The notes beneath the pieces were generated by a model that saw nothing but the letters and a program-made list of their open reading frames with translations, was not told the DNA's origin and searched no databases. Below, piece after piece: positions 524 to 18,800 of a stretch of DNA of 64,000 nucleotides (positions within the stretch are counted from its first letter, which is position 1; every line of letters starts with the position of its first letter). A program made the position numbers and the translations under genes. This DNA is from Guillardia theta CCMP2712 (taxonomy: Eukaryota > Protista > Cryptophyta), in contig NW_005434652.1 in NCBI RefSeq assembly GCF_000315625.1, positions 488,384-552,383 of the forward strand, given 5' to 3'.

Positions 524-3500
524 ATGAAGTCCCTCCTCCAGAAATTCCGAAAGGAGGAGAAGGAGCAGCCGCTGGGCGAGTGCGGAGTGGGGATCGTGTT
601 TGCCCCAGGGCCAGACAAGGGGTTGTATGTCCGTGAGATCGCAGAGGGAGGCCCAGCCTGGAGGGCAAACGAGGGGTACAGCGGCCCGATCAATGGCAGG
701 GAGAGCGTCGTCAGGGTCGGCGATTGCCTTCTTGATGTACAGGTGAAGCTCGTTTGTGAAGACTTTGGGTTGTCCTAACAGTGTTGGATCAGGACGTCTT
801 GGAGCCCTACAACCCCTACTCAGACAAGCCGGCAAAGAAGGGCAAGAAGCACGATGTGTTCGGCAAGAACCTGAGCCACGTCATCCGTGTCCTAAGAGGG
901 CCGCCGGATAGCTACGTCGAGCTCACCTTCCGGCGCGTCACCAACCGCGGGCTTGCTGTGCCTGTGACTGTCTGCATCCAGCGCGGAGAACCGGCAACCA
1001 CACGAGACGTCGACAACTATCGTGTGAAGCGACTGAGCGCTGAGCTGCAAGAGAGGTTCAAGGACATCGACGAGGACAACAGCGGCGAGATCTCGTTGGA
1101 TGAAGTTGTTTCCTACCTCCTTCGAAACCCGTTGCCTGGCCAAGGTGACGTGTGGAAGACCGCCAACTTCCTCTTCAAGAGGGCGGACAAGGATGAGAGT
1201 GGGTCCATCAGCGCCGCTGAGTTTGAGAAGGAGTTCAACAAGCTCTATGAGCAGATGGCGTCACAAACAGCTCCTACCGATCTGGAGGAGCAGGCGGAAG
1301 TTTCCATCGAAGAAGCTTTCAGCAACTCTCTAGCCTCCATGCGCGAGGATCTGATTCGAGCGATTCATGTGATCAAACGCCCGTACATGATGCAGCTGTG
1401 GCAACACATTCGAGACCCGGAGGACGCGTTTCTGATCTCCAGCATGTACCGGTTGGAGGGCTACGACTCCCAGAAGCCAGGCTCTGGCAAGTACATCCTG
1501 CACTCGAAGATCTATGATGCCAGTAGCCAGTTCTTCTGGAAATGCTTCTTGCGCATTCATGCTGCGCTGCACACTGCGCAAGCGATCTTGAAGAAGGAGA
1601 TGGAGCAGGAGTTCATCGACGAGGAGGAAGAGGAAGGAGCCATCATTGAAGTCAGCAAGCTGCTTGTCCTGCCAAGGGTCATCTCCCTCGATGAGCTTTC
1701 AAGAGAGCACGAATCGCGCTCCACCATCATGGTGAACGTGAGCCGTTGCCCTGGTCGAGGATACCCGCCGCGGTTGTGGCAGCCGAAAGAGAAAGTTATT
1801 GATCTGTTTGCGAGCCAGAAGTTCATCGAGATGCCTTCGCCGTTCATAGGCCGAACAGAGTCAGTCTATCACGTGATCGAGTCTCTAACTCTCAAGAGGC
1901 TCAACACCATCATCGGTGAGACCGGGTTCGGCAAGAGCTACACCCTCCGTGCCGTCTTGCACACCCTGCAGGTGCGAGCAGAGGAGTCTCCGACGGGAAG
2001 GTACATGTACAAGGACGGAGTCTTCCTCGTCGACTGCATAGACATCCGATCCTTCGAGCGCCTGGCTTACGTTCTTGGGACGTCGTTCGGGCTGCTGAGC
2101 GTGTCGGTCAAGGAGATCATTCGGGACATTCATGGCGCAAATTTCCTGCTGGCGCTGGATGGAGTCGACGGGCTGCTGGACATCGGGCTGAGCGAGATGC
2201 GCACCTTCATAACAGACCTGCTGGAGGGATGCCCGGGGATGAGCATGATTATGACGTGCAACAGCGCGTGCGGCATCCCCTACGAGAACATCATCGGCCT
2301 CACCATGCTGAACCACAACGAGCTCGCGCAGCTCGTGTGCTACGACTTCCCCCCGGGCAAGGACTACCGCTTCACGTCGTCGGAGGTCGTCTGCGACTAC
2401 CTCAACGGCAACCCCTTCGCTGCAAGGCTGGCGGCGTCGCTGATCTCGGAGAAGATCAGCCCGGCCGAGATGCAGGACGTGATCTCAACCCTCAAGGACA
2501 TCGACGTCAGGAACACACGGGCCAGCCTCATCGACGCGGACCCCTGGGCTGACGGCACGCGGGTGATCCTCAACTTGGACGGCTCGGTCTACGGCTCTTC
2601 CTTGTGCCTGTGTGCCTGGATGAAGATGGCGCTGGGCCACACCACGACTCACTTCGAACGTGCCTACAACTTCGTGCGGTTCCTTGTGTTCTTCCCGGGA
2701 GGCGTGCTGTACCGGGACGTGACGGCGCTGGTGCACGAGGCCGAGAAAGTTCTCGATTGGCTGATCAACTCGTTCAAGTTCGTGGATGTCTTGAATCTCG
2801 ACGGGACCACCTGCTCCCTGAAGGAAGCGATCGCGAGCAAGAGCGCGGTCCTCAAGCTGAGGACGAGCGTGGCCAAGGTGGTGAATATCATGAACGAGCC
2901 GTTCCCAAAGGAGAGCAGGCGGTACCTCAAGCTCATGTTTCCGCTGCTCGAGCGCCATGCGGAGGATGTGCTCCAGAGCATTGAGCACAACGACAGCGCC
3001 ACTGCCGTGATGATGCTCTCGATGATCGAGTCCAACATCCTCTCCTGCACAGACGCGGAGGTGATGCTGCGCGCTGACATCTGCGGCACAGACACGGAGA
3101 TGATCGAGAGCATCGGGAAGGTTTCTTACACCCTTGCAATCATCCTGATGTCTTTCAACCGCCTGCCGGAGGCCCTTGACGCCTGTGCAACTGCCTGCTT
3201 CTTCTTCAAGACCGTCTGCGAGTACGAGATCACCGGCCCGTCGATCGCTCAGAGGCGCCTGGATGACCATCCCGTCAAGGGTCCAGCTAGCCTCGCCCGT
3301 GGCCTCCGTCTGTCAGGCGAGATCAAGCTCATGGTTGGTGCTCTTGACTCGGCGATGGAGGACCTGAAGAACGGCTACTTGCTGGAGTGCCCCAAGAAGT
3401 TGTCGGTGATCGCCTTCAGTCACCTCGGCTCGCCCATCGGGCAGGGAGACTGCCTGACGGCGCTCGGGGAGATCGAGTTGCTCACAGGAGATTTCCCGGC

Positions 3501-6823: not shown

Positions 6824-8153
6824 ATGAACCGATCTCTCGATCGCAAGAAATGCATCCTTTTGCTCGCTCTGTATGTGATTTGTCTCAATGCTCCAGCAGC
6901 AAGCATTGAGCGAGGTAAGGTAGACGCATACGCGGCTTCAGTCCATGCCCTCAGAGAGAGGCTGAAGAAGAGAGCCCCCACGGACGAGAACAATGATCAG
7001 AACCTTCTGGAGCTCCAGAACTTGTTGGCGACAGCTGAAAATTCGATCAGGGACAAGAAAACAGATGCCAAGAAGCAAATGGAAGAACTTCGTAAGCGGG
7101 AAGCAGGATTACATCGAAGTCAAGTCCTCTGGCGCAGCAAAGCCAAGGAAGCAGAGAGAAACGCTGAGATGGCGCGCAAGAAGGAGGCCGAGGCGGTGAA
7201 AGCGAAGGATCTGGCACAGGTTTCATCCCAAGAAGCATACAGCCTCGAGGTTGCCTCAAAACAGTGCGAGGAGGAAACCCGATGTTTGAAATCAAGTGTC
7301 TCTCAACTGATGGAAGAGACTAAGGACGCAGAAATCGAGCTGAGTGAGCTGAAGAGCCAGATCAAGGATCTTTCATTATCCAGTAGGCTTGCTATTGCTC
7401 GTCAAGTCAAGGCGAGGCCAGCTGAGGGGTTGAGAAGATTTGCCGGTCAACGGTATGAGGCGGAGATCATGAACGCGGACGTGGCAGACAAGAACAGTAG
7501 GACAATCCCACTAGAAGGTGACGACAGGACAAAGTTAAGAGATGCCAGCAGACAAACAGCGGAGGAGATCGGAGGAAGAACTGAGAGTGGGCCCAGCGCT
7601 ATCCGGAGGAGGCTCGATCCGAAGGATTCCGATCTTCCTCCCTTGGATGGCCTGAGGGATGAATCGGAGCCCGAGCAAGCTGAGACTGCAAATCAAGATA
7701 CGTTTCAGTCAAGGTCATTGGCGGAGATGATTGAGGACGGGGCTGAAGCTGCATCAAAGGATGGAAACGGTGAGCATGTCGCGAGTGCAAAGCGTCAGTC
7801 CAAGCGAACCAAACAAGGCACCTTGGTTCAATCCGTTGATGCCAGCACAGAGGCTCCTGAAAGGGCCAGTAGCGTCTCCAAGGGCCACTCAAAGAGCAAG
7901 GAGAAGGATCATGAGGTACTCCTTCAGTCTCGGCACTGCCTGTCCTGATCCTTGACGATATACAGTTGAGGTGTACCCCGACTGCTGCAAACTTCCACGA
8001 AGACCGTCAGAGCCCGGATCAAAACCTTGCTGGTAGTCACTGCCACTGTCTGATGCCAGATGTCTCTTACACGGATGAGATGCAGATGGAGACAATGACA
8101 AGATAACCCGTAAGTCTTCGTCCAAAGAGAGCAAGCACAGTGAAGGTAGATGA
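6824..8153 (+). CDS. Hypothetical secreted/ER coiled-coil protein
   Basis: 374-aa open frame with an N-terminal hydrophobic signal-like segment (CILLLALYVICLNAPAA), heptad-rich E/K/Q region and low-complexity tail. The 3' exons are inferred from short GT-AG introns, so the end is uncertain. Confidence 0.65.
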
Positions 8154-8415
8154 AGCCTTTCCTTGTCGTTCCCCTCATCTCGACCCCGCGGCAGGCAAGA
8201 AGAAGAAGGAAAAGAAGAAGAAGAAGCCGGTTGCTTTGTAATTTATTTTGAAAAGTATGTGATTCTTTGTGCCAACTATCATGCTTGCTATAGTCACACT
8301 TTTGGGTCACTCACTGATACTGCTAAATTACAAGAGGAGCTGATCAAAGATTACTTGCAAAGCAATCTTCATGTTGTAGCTGAAACCTGCTTGAGACTTG
8401 GAAGACAAGTCTGTC

Positions 8416-8880
8416 CTATGATTCGTTGACCTTCTTGATTCGTCCTGTGAACGGCATGCCGCTACGGAAGCCAGTCTTAAACCGAGCGAACACTTTTTTC
8501 ATGTGGCGGCGTCTTCCCATGCCTTCAGGATTCTTCTTGAGGGTGTAGCGCTTCATCTTCTGAGAGCTATGGCGACTTTTACGCGGATAGCTCATGTGAT
8601 ACTTGTACCCGGGATGAGACTTCGCTCCTGTCCCATGCTTTCCCTGCGAGGCAGTTCCCTTCTTGCCTCCTGATAGGCGCAGGACAGATGGCATATGGTC
8701 CACAAGAGTGGCATGATGGGCTGAAGATTGAAGAAATGAAGTGATCAGTGACTTTCGGTTGCTGGAACATACGATGAGTTGACTTGGGAGGCTTTTCTCG
8801 TCAGATGCTGATGCGACCTGAATACTGCTTGCAACAAGAGAAACCAAGACCAACAGCATGTTGGGGATCATGTTTGCCAT
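8416..8880 (-). CDS. RPL37: Ribosomal protein eL37-like (zinc finger lost) with N-terminal bipartite targeting leader
   Basis: The C-terminal 82 aa (KKGTASQGKH...SYPRK...GMGRRRHMKKVFARFKTGFRSG) align by eye with eL37 (TKGTSSFGKR...GYPAK...[22 protein letters not shown]). The N-terminal 72 aa are a signal peptide (MLLVLVSLVASSIQVASA) plus a Ser-rich spacer ending VLRLSGG. Intronless. Confidence 0.8.
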   Translation of the reverse strand: MANMIPNMLLVLVSLVASSIQVASASDEKSLPSQLIVCSSNRKSLITSFLQSSAHHATLVDHMPSVLRLSGGKKGTASQGKHGTGAKSHPGYKYHMSYPRKSRHSSQKMKRYTLKKNPEGMGRRRHMKKVFARFKTGFRSGMPFTGRIKKVNES

Positions 8881-9748
8881 GACGGAGGATCTAGCCAGAG
8901 AGAAAGAGCAAAGAGAGTCGGGGGCCGAAGGATGGCTCGAAGAAATCAGAACAGGACGGCGCTGGGACTGAGCTTGAACCTGCTGCGCAGGGTGTGCATG
9001 AGCGGCCGGGAGGGGAAACGGTGGGATGGCCTAGGGGTGGGGGTGGTAGGATTCGACGTAGACGGGAGGGGTGTTTCCTACTAGAAACCTGGGTAGGGGT
9101 AGTTAGTTGAGAAAGTTTGAAAGTTCTACCAGAGGAAGATCAATTCCAAAGTTTTCAAACGAAGTTCATTGAGAAGTTTGGAAGTTTGGATCAATTACCC
9201 CTACCCTCCAATTAACAGAGAAAATAACCGGTGTGAAAATTCAATTTGAATCCGACCATGGCCGATGGGTACCCGACGGGATCCCGGGGTGGTGACGATG
9301 GCAGAAGATGCGAGAAGAGTGAGAGAAGAAGAGACGAAGAAAGAAGATTTGGGTATACGTAGACAGACAGAGCATGACCAGCATGGAAAAGTGTGGAGGA
9401 AGGATCAGGAGGAGAGATGGCAATCTAGACTTGGGCGACGAAGGGGTTGTGGAGCGAAAGAAGGATTCCACGGCGAGCATGAAGGAAGGGATGAAAATGA
9501 TTATAGACATGGAAGAGGAATAGAACGATCCTATGCTCAAGCAATGAACAATCAGGAGTGATAAAGCATTTAGTCATCTATAAATACAAAGATTTCTCCA
9601 CATTGAATTTTGTTGAACCGCAGTCTGACTCCTGCTTGAATTAGTTCAAACAAAGTTTATGACATTTTAATTCTTGGGGCATCCGAAACTTTCTGGTAAG
9701 GGGCTTCTACCGTTTGAACCTTTCCATGATGTACGAACTCACACCAGA

Positions 9749-12700
9749 ATGAGCGGCGCCGTTCCCTCCACCCCGATGACACAGACTCGTCAAACTCGTT
9801 CCTCGCGTACCCACACAGGTGAACTTCATGACAGTGAATGATCCTTCTAATACCCTGGAATCAGATGAATTCGACAAAGAAAATCTTCCGCCTCCCTTCG
9901 CCACTCCGATCGGCAAGCCAGTTCCTGCATCTGCAACCCCTGTGCATCCTGGAAGCCATGCTTGCTCAGGCACTCGCACCTTGCTGTTTGATTGCTATTT
10001 CAGTGTTGTGAACCAAGATACAGAAACTCCATCTAACAAACCCACATTCACCCCGAGCTCCAAGACAGGAGAGGCCCCCAAGACCTTAGACCAGGTGATT
10101 GCTTTTCTCATTGATTGCGATGGGCTCACCGGATGTTGCAGTGGGACAAGATACTTCGGAGTTTGCCCATGTCGACAGCAGCTGACAGGGTGAAGTTGTC
10201 TTGTCAGGTACAGAGGCAAGTCATGTTGCTCATTCTTTTTGGTTGACAGGCGAGACTCGAGCGTCTCTTCGAACGAGTTCTGGGGTCCGGCAGCGGCACG
10301 GAGGAGCTTGAGATTTCTTCTCATAAAGACAACGAGGTCTGGCGCTGTGCTTGCAATACGATGAGGGATTGAGGATGTGTTGATGCAGACCTACATCTCT
10401 CTTTGGCTCTACCGGATAACTCTTGACCCGGATGAGGGATTGTCGTACACGAAGTTTATGCGAAAATGGCACATTGGAAGAAAATGTGCTGCTGTCTATA
10501 TCCAGCAGGCACTCTCATCATCTTGTTGTATAATGGTTCGAGAGTTGATGGATACACCAGGGACTTCTTTCAGGAGACAAAGCATACAAGCCTATTCAGG
10601 TGGAGCACCAACCCCACTGCTTTGACCTGAGATCATGCATTTCTGTGCAGGAGGGGAAAGAGAATGGTGCCCAACCTGTGTCTGTCCTCGATGACCTGCT
10701 CAAATCTGGAGGGTCAGAAAGTTGCTCACCCGATTGATGTTTCTGAAAAGCGTTTGTAGCGATGGGAAGCCCTTTCAAGATGTTTGTCATGAAGTTTTGA
10801 AATCTTATCCCGAGGTACACACTAACTCTTTCCGTGAAGACAACTGACATGCTCTACGTTCAGGTCCGGTCGATGCTCTCGTTGGACAAAAAAGTAGAGA
10901 GTTCTTCTGGCTAGAGTTTGGCGTGCGATGACTTTTCTCTAGGCATCGGGGTCGACTCAGACTGCTCCGCCTGTGCAAGAGGTTTTCCCCCTGATTGCTT
11001 TGGTTCTGCTTCCTGAAATCTTCAAAGCAGCCAAAGGAGGATACCGTTGTGTTCCAGACCAAGGTCACCATACAGACTCCTGGTGTCAATGTGATGATCT
11101 TCCACCACAGGCGGACAAGACTCCAAAGGTCGCAAAGAAGGTGATATTTCCCCAGCGCTGTCCTGTCATATCCCTTTGCCGACTCTGAAGTCATGACGAA
11201 TACATGATGCTCTTTGAATGCTTCAGGCTGCAATTGAGGAGAAAGAGGAGACTGTGGTCTTCAGCAAGGACATGCATGGAAGTGCCTCGAAGGGAACCTC
11301 ACTTCGAAGTCGGACGGAAACGGAATCCGCGAAGTCGGACGGAAAACCAGAGGAGAAGAAGAGTTCTTCCATCAGACGCGGAGCCTTGCGTTCCGTGAAG
11401 AGAACGGGATTGGGAGGTGATTCCCCTCCATCGTTCTCCTGCGCCGGTTTGAATTGCAGCAGCTGGTCCAGCAAGGCGAGTTTGCCCCAACGAGGCTGTC
11501 GCTGAGGATGAAGAGGCCACCAAGACAGGTTGGGACTTGTCATGCTGGCAGCATGTCTTCCTGACAGATTTCGTCAGTCGATCCCGTCGAAGTCTCCGAG
11601 CGAACAAGGTAGGGCTTCATGATTACGTGCTGCGTGCTGTTCGCCTCGAGATGAATCCTTGCGGCAGTGAGAAAACTTTGGAGCATTCTGCTGAATCAGC
11701 AGAGATCCCCCCCTCCTCCAAGGGCATCCAACACCTTGTGACCGCAGCTTCCCCATGGTTGTATGAGCGCCTGACCTCGTTCCCAGCCTCCCATCACAGA
11801 GCAGGAAGGAAGAAGTTCCAGTGAAGGGAACAACAGGTTCGTGCCTGTTCCTCTCTCCAGCTCGAGCTGACCTGCGCTCAGCATCTCTTCGGGCACGTCC
11901 AACGATTCTGTGAACCGAACTCTGACGCAGGTCTTGCCCGGCTACCTGAACCCTCAACGCATTCACTGTCTCCATAGGAACAAAATCATCTGTCGGACAT
12001 GCCAACTCAACCGATCGACAATGGTAGGACGGGAGGGGTTTGAACTTGCCTGAGTGGCTGAACTCGTTCTGGGCAGGCAAATGCGGCGGCTCTCCCTCCT
12101 TCTCCGGTGCTGCTGCCTCCAAGGGCTTACGAGAGTCCCTGACTGTCATCGACAGATCTCCCGACCCAGCCTCAGCCCAGCATGTTGGGTTCCAGACCGT
12201 CGGGTAGGATTGAGAGGGAGGTCGAGGAGGTGATTTTCCGGCCGCTGGCAAGTAGCATGGAGGCCGAGCAGGTAGCTGACGACTCGTGGGAATGGAAGGG
12301 CTGGACTCTGACGCGACTGTTTATAGCAGGCAAGAGTGCAAGAGGTGCCCAAGGTTTCTCAACAGGAGCGCGAAGCTGCAGACTCTGACGCCTGCGGTTC
12401 CAGGGATACATCTCCGTCAACTCGAAGTTGTACAAGAAGGTAGGCGGGTTGCCCTGCCTCGTGCTTGCTCTTGACGAGAAGAGCAGATTGAAGTGAAGGG
12501 GAAGGGAGGAGGAGGGAAAGTGTACAAAGTTCACCTCAAGGACGACCCGAACAGCATCTGGGCCATTAAGAAGATCAAGGTGATGGAGAGGAGGAGGTCG
12601 TCGTTCCTCCTGCTGAAATCTCTTCAGCTGGAAGGCGACGAAGAGCTCAGAGTGAGCGTGCAAAACGAGATCGACCTGCTGATCGCCTTGAGGTGGAGCG

Positions 12701-15693
12701 TGAGGGGAGAGGGGAGAGGGGAGAGGGGAGCGAGAGACAAGGACAGTGAAGGGGAGTTGTGTTGTCAGGAATGTGATGGTGATGACGGTGACAGGGGGCA
12801 GCCTTCCATCATTCACATGGAAGATTATGAGATCGGAGATGACTTGGTTTACATGGTGATGGAATGTGGAGAGCAGGTGAAGCTGTCGGAGGAGTTGGAA
12901 TGTTGTCACTGACATGCGGCAGGATCTTGCCCAAGCTCTGCACAAGAGACAAGTCAGCCATCCACCACTAGCTCCTCTTCCTCTTCGTTCTTCTTCCCCT
13001 CCATCTTCCAACTCCTCATCCGACTTCTGCTTCTCCTCCCTCCCCGCACCTTATCTTCCCTTCAGCCCCTTCCTTCACGCACCCCCTGATGATTTTCGTC
13101 TCAACCTCCTGACTGCCATCCCCTGCAGGTCCGCTCGCTCCGAGGGGTTTGGAAGGCGATGCTCGAGGCCGTGCAGGTAGCGCCGCGTCTTCTCCTCCCC
13201 TCGAGCCCCGACCCTCTCGCCAGGTCGTTCACGAGCAGCGAGTGGTGCACGGAGACCTGAAGCCAGCCAACTTCCTCATGGTGAACAAGGAGCTCAAGGT
13301 GCCCTCTCCTTCTCTCCACTTCCCTCCTTTTNNNNNNNNNNNNNNNNNNNNNNNNNNNNNNNNNNNNNNNNNNNNNNNNNNNNNNNNNNNNNNNNNNNNN
13401 NNNNNNNNNNNNNNNNNNNNNNNNNNNNNNNNNNNNNNNNNNNNNNNNNNNNNNNNNNNNNNNNNNNNNNNNNNNNNNNNNNNNNNNNNNNNNNNNNNNN
13501 NNNNNNNNNNNNNNNNNNNNNNNNNNNNNNNNNNNNNNNNNNNNNNNNNNNNNNNNNNNNNNNNNNNNNNNNNNNNNNNNNNNNNNNNNNNNNNNNNNNN
13601 NNNNNNNNNNNNNNNNNNNNNNNNNNNNNNNNNNNNNNNNNNNNNNNNNNNNNNNNNNNNNNNNNNNNNNNNNNNNNNNNNNNNNNNNNNNNNNNNNNNN
13701 NNNNNNNNNNNNNNNNNNNNNNNNNNNNNNNNNNNNNNNNNNNNNNNNNNNNNNNNNNNNNNNNNNNNNNNNNNNNNNNNNNNNNNNNNNNNNNNNNNNN
13801 NNNNNNNNNNNNNNNNNNNNNNNNNNNNNNNNNNNNNNNNNNNNNNNNNNNNNNNNNNNNNNNNNNNNNNNNNNNNNNNNNNNNNNNNNNNNNNNNNNNN
13901 NNNNNNNNNNNNNNNNNNNNNNNNNNNNNNNNNNNNNNNNNNNNNNNNNNNNNNNNNNNNNNNNNNNNNNNNNNNNNNNNNNNNNNNNNNNNNNNNNNNN
14001 NNNNNNNNNNNNNNNNNNNNNNNNNNNNNNNNNNNNNNNNNNNNNNNNNNNNNNNNNNNNNNNNNNNNNNNNNNNNNNNNNNNNNNNNNNNNNNNNNNNN
14101 NNNNNNNNNNNNNNNNNNNNNNNNNNNNNNNNNNNNNNNNNNNNNNNNNNNNNNNNNNNNNGTCCTCCTCCTCCTCCTCCTCCTCCTCCTCCTCCTCCTC
14201 CTCCTCCTCCTCCTCCTCCTTCTCCTCCTCCTCCTCCTCCTCCCTCCCCAACCACCACCACTCATTATCACCTCCTCCTCCTCCTCCTCCTCCTCCTCCT
14301 CCTCCTCCTCCTCCTCCTCCTCCTCCTCCTCCTCCTCCCTCTCCAACACCACCATCATCATCACCACCACCACCACCACCACCACCTCCTCCTCCTCCTC
14401 CTCCTACACCACCAGTACCACCACCATCGCCATCACATCCTCCTCCTCGGCCTTACCACACATCTCAACCTTCCTGCTCCTGCCCGCCTTCCTGAGACTC
14501 TTGTAGGCTATCACGGACAAGAATCACAACATCGACTTCCCAGCCATGGGCCCAAGTGCGCCGGTGGAGAAAGAGGTGAAGGAGACAGAGGGAGGAAGCG
14601 ACAAGCTGACGTCACGAGGCAGTTGATCGACGTCCTCAAGCGAACCCTCGAGCGAGATCCTGCCAAGAGGCCCTCCATCCCTCAGGCAACTCCTCCCTCC
14701 CTCCCTCCCTCCCTCCTCCCTCCCTACTTCTCTCCTCCCATCTCCCTTCTCCCCGCCCTCCTCCCTCCTCCTCGTCGCCACTCTGACGTACCCGACAGCT
14801 CAAGCAGCATCCCTGGCTTGTCCCTCCCAAGTTCGCCCTCGACTCCTACAACATCCTTGTCATGGTTTCTAAGGTCTCTGACTCAGTCCCCGTGCTCCAT
14901 CCTCCCCTATTCTCCTCCCTCCCTCCCTCCCTCCCTCCTCATTGCTCTCCAGGTTCGAGCGCTCCATCGTGAGAACCCCGAGAGGACGGACGAAGACATC
15001 AAAGAGCTTCTCATCCCTCTCATGGAAGCTGCTGGCTTGGCCATCAAGGAGCCTCCTGCTCCTCCTGCGTCGAAATCCGTTCCTTCCGCTTCTGCCGCTC
15101 CTCCTCCTCCTCCTCCTCCTCCTGCCGCTGCTCCACCTGCCCCTCCTCCGCCTGCTGCCCTTCCATCCAAACCTTGCGGTCAACAAGCTCTAGCCCCGTG
15201 AGCAGTTTAAGTTTCCAACTGCTCAGCTGACGTGCGGACAGGAACTCAAGTGCGGGGATCAGAAGCACCGCTCCTCCTCCTCCTCCTCCTCAGTCTCACT
15301 CGTCGAGCTGTGGGCTCGGAGTGTCCGCAGCTGAAGTTCTTGCGCAAAGACACAAGCTCAAGAAAGTTGAGGTAACTCTTGCAGCCTCCCTCTTCCTCTT
15401 CCTCTTCCCCTTCCTCTTCCTCTTCCTCTTCCTCTTTCTGTTCCTCTTCCTGTTCCTCTCCTCCTCCTTCCCTTCCTCTTCCCTTCCCTTCCTCTTCCTC
15501 TTCCTCTTTCTGTTCCTCTTCCTGTTCCTCTCCTCCTCCTTCCCTTCCTCTTCCCCTTCCTCTTCCTCTCCCCCTACCTCTCCTCCTTCCTCTCCCCTCC
15601 TCCTCCCCTTCCTCTCCTCACGAATTGCCTTCACAGCCTGCCCCAAGGCGCCAGCGAGCAGCGGAAGCATGGCAGGGGAGCTCGGGGATCTGA
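9749..15693 (+). CDS. MPS1: Mps1/TTK-type spindle-checkpoint kinase (KEN box, Mad3/Bub1-like TPR, kinase, Pro-rich WH2-like tail); interrupted by an assembly gap
   Basis: Spliced kinase motifs GKGGGGKVYKV, WAIKKI, NEIDLL, YMVMECGEQDL, VVHGDLKPANFLMV and LIDVLKRTLERDPAKRPSIPQLKQHPW are typical of Mps1. The N-terminal part has DKENLPP and LWLYRI...FMRKWHIGRKCAAVYIQQ...GKENGAQP. The 3' end is uncertain. Confidence 0.8.
13332..14161. other. Assembly gap (N run) within the Mps1 kinase gene
   Basis: Run of N flanked by (CCT)n microsatellite. It hides the DFG/APE region of the kinase. Confidence 0.99.
14163..14450. repeat. (CCT)n/(CCA)n trinucleotide microsatellite, intronic
   Basis: Long pure CCT runs followed by CCA runs, directly visible. 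Confidence 0.95.
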
Positions 15694-15854
15694 TCAAGTA
15701 CGGGCTGGAGAGCATCAGGGCAGGAGTAGCGGATGAGAGCACAGGAGAGCACTCGGGGAAGACATGGGAGTTCACCTCGGAGTTCTCGAGCGGGGGGGGA
15801 TATGAACCCCAATTGCTCCGAATGAAAGAGGAGGCAGAAACATGCTCCAAGTTT

Positions 15855-18800
15855 TTACTTGCAGGTTCTGGGCCCTGTTACTTCCTCCTCCTCCTCCTCC
15901 TCCTCCTCCTCCGTATCTTTCTCCTCACTCTGCCACTGCCCCACCTTCTTGAGCATGTGGGAGTACTTGTCCACGAGGGCTGGCTGCTTCAGTCGCTTGT
16001 AGATGGCGACCAGCTGGGTCAGCGCATCCTTCCTCTCCGCCTCTGAGGGCTGCACTTCATGCTCCAACACCTGCGTCCTCGTCAACAGCGGCAGCACTCA
16101 ACCTCCCCTCCTCTCTCCGCTCCTTTCATTCCTCCCCTCCCCTCCACTCTCCTCTCCTCCCTCCCTCCGCACCTGCCGACAAGCTTCGGCGGCAGCAGGT
16201 AGGTCGTTCTCTCCCAGGCACGTCTGGGCGAGGAGGAGGTGAAGCGCCGCACGGTTGCTCGTCTCGAGGGCTCTGCGGAGGGTGGAGGACGCGAGGCTGA
16301 AGATGCCGGCCTTGACCTGCAGCCTCGCCATCTGCTCTAGGATGAAAGTCCCTACGGGGAACGTCTCTGACGTCGATAGCCCCAGCTTGAGCGCCTGCTG
16401 CAGGGCCAGCTCGCTCTCGTCCGGTTTCCCGGCCTCCATGGCGATCACCGAGAGCATCCCCCACACCTGCGGGTTCGACGGGTCGAGGATGTTCGCCTCA
16501 CACAGCGCCTCCTCAGCCTGCCCGAGCTCGTTCTGCTTGTAGCAGGCGAGGCCCAGGGCCAGCCAGGAGGAGGCGGAGGGGAGGAGCTTGCACGCCTTGA
16601 TCGCCACATCCTTGGCCTCGTAGAACTTGCCGGTCCACAGGTAGAGGCGGCAGAGCCGGAGGTACTGCAGGGGCTCGAGGTTGGGGCTGCGCTGACCCAT
16701 CGCTTTCTCGTAGAAGCTCATGACCTCCTTGCCCGACGAGCTCGCGGGCTTGTCGCAGCTCAGCGTGTCCCAGCGGCCCTCGAGGAAGAGCGCATGCCCC
16801 AACAGCGTCATGGCGACCGCGTGCCTCTTGTCCTTGCCCAAGATGCCGTCGGGGGGCAGCAGCATCTCCTTGACCCTCTCCAGCTGCCGGACTGACAAGT
16901 AGGTCTTCGCCAGCAGGATCTCAAACTCCTGGCTGGGCCCGTTCTTGACAAGGTCCTGTCAACGAGGCTCAGGTGGGGCCTTGCTGAATCTTCCTGTACC
17001 TGAGCAGCTGCTCTCTCCACGAGTTGCACTGCATGCAGCTCGGAGGCGAAGAGTCCGCGCGGATGTAGGCGCTGCAGCAGCAGCGTAAGAGGNNNNNNNN
17101 NNNNNNNNNNNNNNNNNNNNNNNNNNNNNNNNNNNNNNNNNNNNNNNNNNNNNNNNNNNNNNNNNNNNNNNNNNNNNNNNNNNNNNNNNNNNNNNNNNNN
17201 NNNNNNNNNNNNNNNNNNNNNNNNNNNNNNNNNNNNNNNNNNNNNNNNNNNNNNNNNNNNNNNNNNNNNNNNNNNNNNNNNNNNNNNNNNNNNNNNNNNN
17301 NNNNNNNNNNNNNNNNNNNNNNNNNNNNNNNNNNNNNNNNNNNNNNNNNNNNNNNNNNNNNNNNNNNNNNNNNNNNNNNNNNNNNNNNNNNNNNNNNNNN
17401 NNNNNNNNNNNNNNNNNNNNNNNNNNNNNNNNNNNNNNNNNNNNNNNNNNNNNNNNNNNNNNNNNNNNNNNNNNNNNNNNNNNNNNNNNNGGAGGAGGAG
17501 GAGGAGGAGGAGGAGAGAGAGAGAGAGAGAGAGGGTGAGCTGGAGGAGGAGGAGGAAGGGGGGGGGGGGGGAGGAAGTGGAGGTGGCAGTGGACAAGGAG
17601 GAGGAGGAGAAGCGACCTTGAAGTAAGTCTCTGCATCGGCATATCGATTCATAGTGCACAGCAGGACTCCGTAGCTCATGAGCGCCTGGATATGTCGGGG
17701 GTCGAGCATGAGCGCCTCTCGCAGGCACTCCTCCGCCTTCTCAGGCATGCCAGCGCGGATGCAGAAGGTCCCGTAGTCGAACCAGAGGACGGCGTCGGAG
17801 GCGTCGGTGATGATGCGCTGGTTGAGGTGGGAGGCAGCAAGGTGGAGATCCTGGTTCATTTCTGCCTCGATCGCCAGCCTCATCTGCTCCCTCAGGTACT
17901 TCTTCTTGGCTTCTTCCGAGCGCTCGACGGCTGAGATCTTCTTCGGGGGGCAAGACCTTGTTGAGGTTGCTGTTCATGAGCTCTTGCAGGTAGACGTACA
18001 GCTGGGAGATGAACTGGAGCAGGGTGAGAGTAAGAGAGAGGAGAGCGGATCAGATGGAGGAGGAGGAGGAGGAGGAGAGGTAGGAAGGAGGAGGAGGAGA
18101 AGGAGGAGGAGGAGGAGGAGGAGGAGAGGTAGGAAGGAGGAAGGGGAGGGGGAGGGGGAGGAAGTAGAGGGATAGGAGGAGGAAAGTGGAGGAAGACGCC
18201 ATCACCTTCTTTCCTTCCTCCGACGTCGCATCAAGACCTGACTTGTGAAATTTCTCATGAATCAGGCGAACGATGCTCTTCTTCAGTCTCTCCTTGTAGT
18301 CATAGTACTTCCCAGATGAGTTCAGATGAAAGATAGCCTGCAGGAAAGTAGCCGGTCAACACCAAGGTGCGACACTGATGATGCAGGATGCATTTCTGTG
18401 GGGGAGGAGGAGGGGATGAAGAGAGGGGGTGGGGGGAGAGAGGAGGAGGAGGAGGAATACGTCTTGCCCAACCTGCTGTCGTCTTGCCTCCATCCCTTCC
18501 GCTGAGATGTTGGAGCTGACTTCGCCGAGGAACATCTCATGGTACTCGTCCGCCAACTGGTAGATGATCTCCTTGACATCGTCGCCGAACTGATCGGCAG
18601 CTGACAGTGGTTTCTCAACCACATCCACGGGAGGCCGGGTAGGGAGCAAGTCCCCGACTTTGGGCAGGACGGGTGGAGGAGGCTTCGGCTTCTCGAAGAG
18701 CGGGTTCAGCAGCTCGATCTCCAGCAGGAGGTAGGTCTCAGCGAGCAGGTAAGGATTCGCGTCCTCGTCCTCCTCAGGCTCCCCACCAGGTGGAGGACAG

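Follow-up and report, generated by a model that had tools for sequence, protein, structure and literature searches.

The eL37-like gene and its surroundings

The Guillardia theta DNA studied here is a single stretch of 64 kb, which we refer to throughout as the window. On its minus strand, a single exon at 8416..8880 encodes a protein of 154 amino acids (P0001), with the stop codon at 8416-8418. The coding sequence is supported by the list of open reading frames, by collinearity with Hanusia phi and by RNA contigs. Hanusia phi, a cryptophyte of the Geminigeraceae, is the closest named relative, and its transcript product (P0002) is collinear with P0001 from the first Met, with 72% identity. 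Starting from the N-terminus, the protein is composed of a predicted ER signal peptide (aa 1-25, 8806..8880), a transit-peptide-like spacer (aa 26-66, 8683..8805), the ubiquitin C-terminus motif LRLSGG (aa 67-72, 8665..8682), after whose last residue, Gly72, we propose a cut, and a mature eL37-like domain (aa 73-154, 8419..8664), all of them on the minus strand.

The transcribed region, as given by contigs of the X1, X4 and X12 sets, extends over 8232..9021 on the minus strand and includes a 5' UTR of about 140 nt, the coding sequence and a 3' UTR. Logan transcriptome contigs from independent studies span 8232-9021 free of gaps and introns, and the mean word depth over this region is 219 in X1 and 100 in X4, both sets of RNA-derived contigs. 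The X1 and X4 contigs also hold a GT..AG splice (8032-8084) of the convergent neighbour gene; the presence of this spliced intron on the very same contigs indicates that they derive from RNA, and hence that the coding sequence of the eL37-like gene is intron-less. The gene is expressed. As its 3' end fuses with the convergent neighbour in the RNA contigs, the ends of the transcript are only approximate, and the raw RNA reads of X22 (nine reads, all in the 3' region) define neither the transcript ends nor the strand for the coding sequence. The X4 assembly graph forks at 8881, next to the ATG (8880): one branch is the genomic 5' UTR (8852-9009), and the other runs into a 1792-nt contig with a different upstream sequence, whose 30 nt nearest the junction do not occur in the window. 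No AG acceptor is present in the genome at this branch point, and the fork could stem from a paralogue, from the use of an alternative 5' end or from chimeric assembly.

The convergent neighbour (6824-8146, plus strand) is made of an open reading frame at 6824-7948, rich in coiled coils and with a hydrophobic N-terminus, and of two small 3' exons, 7964-8031 and 8085-8146, on either side of the intron described above. An (AAG)n-type repeat (8195-8231) lies between the two genes. Elsewhere in the window, within 12001-16000, a low-GC block (GC content 0.38 at 12001-14000) gives way to a strong negative skew at 14001-16000 (GC -0.44, AT -0.25), and several long overlapping open reading frames are found on both strands at 13101-14495.

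Mature domain, leader and junction

The mature domain has 82 residues, of which 24 are Lys or Arg, 2 are Asp or Glu and none is Cys. In a single-sequence phmmer search of the PDB, eL37 accounted for 49 of 50 matches (best E 5e-4), and with a profile of six mature domains it accounted for all 51 (best E 6e-5), being thus the only family matched by the profile, as the sequence-only reading of this DNA had proposed for the mature part. Positions 2-71 of the profile align with eL37 residues 3-83 in the HMMER alignments, so that the Lys following the Gly-Gly corresponds to eL37 residue 2, which comes next after the initiator Met; the earlier suggestion that eL37 homology begins right after the Gly-Gly is therefore upheld. 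KGTASQGK aligns with KGTSSFGK, and GxGRxRHLKKVxRRFKNGFR with its canonical eL37 counterpart, and a helix in the AlphaFold2 (AF2) model (123-135) covers the GxGRxRH..RFK motif. The stretch between these two eL37 motifs, where eL37 has its zinc ribbon, falls short of the eL37 length by about 11 residues; all four zinc-ribbon cysteines are missing from P0001, and no Cys position is conserved across 17 full-length relatives. The sequence-only reading had not remarked on this loss. Pfam-A gave no match for P0001 or five relatives at E values up to 10. Across deep clades the mature domain nevertheless keeps 77% identity over +1 to +22 and 36 invariant positions. Judging from these alignments, we regard the mature part as a real but strongly derived, zinc-less eL37; given the loss of the zinc ribbon and the lack of a match to the Pfam L37e family, it is uncertain whether it functions as an eL37.

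The leader starts with a hydrophobic core at aa 8-17 (mean Kyte-Doolittle value 3.07), which the AF2 model of P0001 places in a helix (5-18). The predicted signal peptide cut, A-S-A|S, is located by the -3/-1 rule only, and on that rule the +1 residue is Ser26. Each of 16 full-length relatives likewise has an N-terminal hydrophobic core within its first 25 residues (Kyte-Doolittle 1.9-3.6); in one relative, P0027, the residue at +1 after the signal peptide is possibly Phe. The spacer that follows is unconserved and contains 31% Ser and Thr, and it appears to be disordered, as aa 24-62 have pLDDT values below 50 and no secondary structure in an AF2 model that was built on 17 sequences and is of low overall confidence (mean pLDDT 56). 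Leaders measure from 68 to 100 residues across the family. A degenerate ubiquitin domain within the leader was considered and rejected: six members gave no Pfam ubiquitin match at E values up to 10, and the leader in the AF2 model is devoid of beta structure.

The Val that closes the spacer and the hexapeptide together read V-LRLSGG (aa 66-72, 8665-8685), immediately followed by KKGTASQGK. The sequence-only reading is correct in both the coordinates and the order of signal peptide, Ser-rich spacer, ubiquitin-like tail and eL37 N-terminus. With the 64-kb window translated in all six frames, LRLSGG is its sole L[RK]LxGG. A lone LRLxGG is unremarkable, about 0.5 being expected by chance per window (a rough estimate, not computed); it is the placement of the motif and its conservation that go far beyond chance. 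Neither the window nor 80 kb of related contigs yielded a second gene bearing LRLRGG, as is to be expected from the rarity of such genes.

The profile used for the deep search was made from mature domains alone, and the junction motif was not part of the query. Exhaustive searching with it yielded 18 proteins, among which every family member carries LRLRGG directly before (K/Y)KGT, the non-family matches being canonical eL37 C-termini. The family grew to 35 members, including Guillardia and Hanusia, through a later word search with a wider alignment. The placement in cryptophytes covers these two members of the 35 (Guillardia theta and Hanusia phi), and the contigs of the others are metagenomic or come from the NCBI assemblies GCA_041443025.1 and GCA_041442895.1. 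In all 35 members [L/M]RL[R/S/T]GG stands directly before (K/Y)KGT, in the form LRLRGG in 32, MRLRGG in one (P0046), LRLSGG in Guillardia and LRLTGG in Hanusia, with R at position -3 in 32 of the 35. When 24 distinct leaders, pairwise less than 50% identical, were aligned at the leader/mature junction, the residues L, R, L, G and G proved invariant. In this alignment the leader from -36 to -7 shows column entropies of 2.2-3.6 bits and a mean pairwise identity of 0.12, the motif from -6 to -1 shows 0 bits, except for 0.5 at -3, and an identity of 0.97, and the mature sequence from +1 to +22 has an identity of 0.77.

The codons of the motif differ between lineages (CTG, TTG, CTT or CTA for Leu; CGT, CGC, CGA or AGG for Arg; GGT, GGC, GGA or GGG for Gly), and these synonymous changes, including CGN/AGG and CTN/TTG, indicate that selection acts on the peptide. 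A chance origin of the motif was rejected, since all 35 members keep it at the junction in spite of such codon changes. The ubiquitin tail is L-V-LRLRGG, LRLRGG being also the tail of ISG15, and in several clades of the family the likeness reaches L-[TV]-LRLRGG. The Guillardia hexapeptide had been described as a mimic of the ubiquitin tail; selection at the protein level speaks for this description, with the amendment that, as relatives carry the exact LRLRGG, LRLSGG is a derived form. The sole tolerant position (R/S/T) corresponds to P3, which is the free position of LxGG-type sites in papain-like proteases and deubiquitinases. As far as conservation goes, the hexapeptide would fit equally well as the end of the leader or as the start of the mature protein.

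Some features of the relatives deserve mention in their own right. In the leaders of P0035 and P0038, which belong to two GC-rich lineages, the motif recurs in degenerate form (GLLLRLEG and GLLLARLGDGG) about 30 residues upstream of LRLRGG, and this copy may have arisen by duplication of the junction and later decay. Most relatives (P0027, P0030-P0032, P0034, P0038, P0040, P0053, P0054, L012-L014 and L018) have an intron after ...SYKYNL, where prokaryote-style gene calls consequently stop or run on, and some have an intron earlier, after GTG; at the point after SYKYNL there is no intron in Guillardia, and several GC-rich relatives read through (e.g., L001-L005 and L007-L009). In L002-L005, metagenomic contigs of one environmental lineage, a cyclophilin-RRM gene (PPIL4/CYP59-like) lies head-to-head with the eL37-like gene, the two genes being at about 720-2270 on the minus strand and 2792-3214 on the plus strand of L002, whose cyclophilin-RRM protein matches plant proteins with about 55% identity. 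A related pair, P0063 and P0043, on contigs that are both 4007 nt long, suggests that this linkage is conserved.

Compartment and fate of the leader

Targeting to the periplastid compartment (PPC) and not to the stroma has a published signature, in which a transit-peptide-like stretch comes after the signal peptide and the +1 residue is not Phe (the Phe rule); the predicted Ser at +1 would fit the PPC over the stroma. The nucleomorph ribosomal proteins of G. theta, Hemiselmis andersenii, Cryptomonas paramecium and Bigelowiella natans are listed in Table S2 of Maier et al. 2013 (PMC3879969). The possibility that rpl37 is missing from the nucleomorph had been raised along with the first description of the gene, and rpL37 is indeed missing from the nucleomorph list of that table, all three cryptophytes included, while rpL36, rpL37A, rpL40 and rpS27A are present; proteins of the periplastid 80S ribosome that are missing from nucleomorphs are encoded in the nucleus (PMC3879969). 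The eL37-like protein is probably such a nucleus-encoded periplastid ribosomal protein. As eL37 is not nucleomorph-encoded, the gap in the periplastid ribosome would be filled by a nuclear gene, and the one described here would supply the missing eL37; the loss of its zinc ribbon would then bear on how the reduced, nucleomorph-associated ribosomes are constructed.

Our preferred reading, which we hold with a little more confidence than doubt, is that of a periplastid eL37 whose leader is removed after the Gly-Gly by a protease specific for the ubiquitin tail, where we infer the localisation as well as the cleavage. The precursor would be brought to the ER by its signal peptide and would cross the periplastid membrane along the ubiquitin-dependent SELMA route, by means of the disordered transit-peptide-like spacer. 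Once in the PPC, a cysteine protease reading the L-R-L-x-G-G ubiquitin tail would cleave after Gly72, and the released mature protein would start with KKGT... at canonical eL37 residue 2, with an N-terminus fit for incorporation into the large subunit. An invariant ubiquitin tail that meets a ribosomal protein exactly at its start offers a precise candidate cut and points to one enzyme class, and we regard the junction motif as a strong candidate for the cleavage site of a deubiquitinase-like leader peptidase. Read in this manner, the architecture is that of a ubiquitin-ribosomal protein precursor in which the ubiquitin body has been swapped for a bipartite targeting signal. The PPC should also process the nucleomorph-encoded eL40 and eS31, if these are ubiquitin fusions as they are elsewhere. 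Both proteins (rpL40 and rpS27A) are made as ubiquitin fusions in other eukaryotes; if the nucleomorph-encoded versions are fusions too, the PPC must contain ubiquitin C-terminal hydrolase activity, which would favour the preferred reading.

Several considerations count against this reading. Typical UCH and USP enzymes cleave efficiently only where the ubiquitin fold is present, and the leader is devoid of it. In addition, Lys and Tyr at the N-terminus are destabilising in the classical N-degron pathway, and a cut after the Gly-Gly would expose precisely Lys, or Tyr in one relative. The invariance of the motif would in fact need no cleavage if the hexapeptide were a sorting, retention or machinery-recognition signal, with the leader either staying in place or being removed at another point by an ordinary peptidase; its readers might be the ubiquitin binders or handlers of SELMA (E1/E2/E3, Cdc48-Ufd1-Npl4 or a catalytically dead deubiquitinase), holding the cargo in the PPC. 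This alternative draws support from Toxoplasma PUBL, a case that also counts against the preferred reading: the RGG that directly precedes the mature domain there escapes processing, and its mutation has no effect (PMC5487736). It draws support, too, from ptDUP, the only named periplastid deubiquitinase, which a 2025 phylogenetic study reported to be absent from cryptophytes; the same study expects 'an alternative enzyme' there, which favours the preferred reading (PMC12412216). A pure sorting signal, however, has no need to abut the start of eL37 homology exactly, as the motif does, and the retention of a disordered extension of at least 47 residues would be hard to square with ribosome assembly, and we consider a signal of this sort unlikely. 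The N-terminus of eL37 is normally buried in rRNA in 80S structures.

The remaining alternatives differ in what they take the hexapeptide, or the protein itself, to be. LRL(R/S)GG might be the mature protein's own conserved basic extension, lying on rRNA at its N-terminus, in which case the cut would be located upstream and the likeness to ubiquitin would be a coincidence; conservation does start at -6 and continues unbroken into the mature domain, and the hexapeptide is basic, as is the rest of the protein. This would nevertheless require that a conserved hexamer be LRLRGG by chance, the probability of which we estimate from residue frequencies at about 1e-7, and canonical eL37 has nothing ahead of residue 2, making a mature extension quite improbable. 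A different origin can be envisaged in which the motif is the relic of a ubiquitin-eL37 fusion, or of a leader borrowed from a polyubiquitin-derived PPC ubiquitin gene; the ubiquitin body would have decayed into a targeting signal while the tail was kept as a processing site. The extended likeness, L-[TV]-LRLRGG, in several clades agrees with such a history, as does the fact that ubiquitin-ribosomal protein fusions are a known gene architecture; against it, no member has a ubiquitin-like sequence or fold upstream, and the leaders are unrelated between clades, so that we give it a slim chance. As it concerns origin, it is compatible with removal of the leader by a tail-specific protease. Finally, the signal peptide, the lost zinc ribbon and the lack of a Pfam match would also be found in a secreted or endomembrane basic protein, or in a decaying eL37 paralogue with no ribosomal role. 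A protein outside the periplastid compartment is hardly credible, in view of the strong conservation of the mature domain in deep clades (77% over +1 to +22, 36 invariant positions), the expression of the gene and the lack of eL37 in nucleomorphs that otherwise encode most large-subunit proteins.

The preferred reading, a periplastid eL37 freed from its leader at the Gly-Gly, would link presequence removal with the ubiquitin machinery that drives SELMA import. We further propose, tentatively and with slightly less than even confidence, that the ubiquitin hexapeptide is a general processing site of cryptophyte periplastid leaders, and that a tail-specific protease other than ptDUP acts as the presequence peptidase. 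Were the site general, a single set of ubiquitin tools would serve both SELMA import and the removal of leaders, presequence processing would here be of a kind distinct from signal peptidase and from the MPP/SPP metalloproteases, and the eL37 gene would stand as the cleanest case of a cut that yields the native N-terminus; a motif both general and cleaved would amount to a new mechanism. Our literature search, which left subscription journals largely outside, found neither RLRGG in connection with a plastid leader nor LRLRGG in connection with a transit peptide, and none of the papers searched, those dealing with diatom N-termini and with the periplastid proteome among them, describes a periplastid leader peptidase or cleavage motif. 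Within the literature searched, we found no published description of this eL37 leader architecture.

Relation to known precursors and import signals

The closest architectural parallel is offered by the ubiquitin fusions of eL40 and eS31, in which, as in the eL37-like precursor, the extension ends in the ubiquitin tail and the ribosomal protein comes directly after the Gly-Gly; release by a deubiquitinase is expected for these fusions and, by our proposal, for the eL37 leader. In contrast with Ub-eL40 and Ub-eS31, however, the extension consists here of a signal peptide and a disordered spacer, and only its last six to eight residues are ubiquitin-like. FUBI-eS30 is a further fusion precursor, cleaved by USP36. 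To our knowledge, eL37 is not among the ribosomal proteins known as ubiquitin fusion partners. The mature domain has two motifs in common with canonical eL37, KGTxSxGK at the N-terminus and GxGRxRHhxxVxxRFKxGFR at the C-terminus, arranged alike and beginning at residue 2, and it differs from canonical eL37 in having about 11 residues fewer, in the loss of the four zinc-binding Cys, in falling below Pfam detection and in its 72-aa leader.

As regards import, the leader resembles the bipartite periplastid signals of cryptophytes and diatoms in its signal peptide, its transit-peptide-like stretch and its predicted non-aromatic +1 residue, and proteins imported through SELMA depend on a ubiquitin-based import machinery, as we propose for the eL37-like protein. 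The literature searched describes no conserved C-terminal motif or processing enzyme for periplastid leaders, whereas the eL37 leader has such a motif. ptDUP removes conjugated ubiquitin, unlike the proposed leader-cutting protease. Toxoplasma PUBL is likewise imported into a complex red plastid and has a leader ending in RGG before the mature domain, for which its authors considered a deubiquitinase; unlike the eL37-like protein, the PUBL cargo is itself ubiquitin-like (PMC5487736).

The site itself can be compared with those of viral proteases. For viral papain-like proteases, such as coronavirus PLpro, an unfolded LxGG resembling the ubiquitin tail is the whole recognition site, and we know of no PLpro-like enzyme in the PPC. 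As in PLpro sites, P4 Leu and the Gly-Gly at P2/P1 are fixed in the eL37 family and P3 is free (R, S or T), with the difference that PLpro sites belong to a viral polyprotein and the eL37 site to an organelle import leader.
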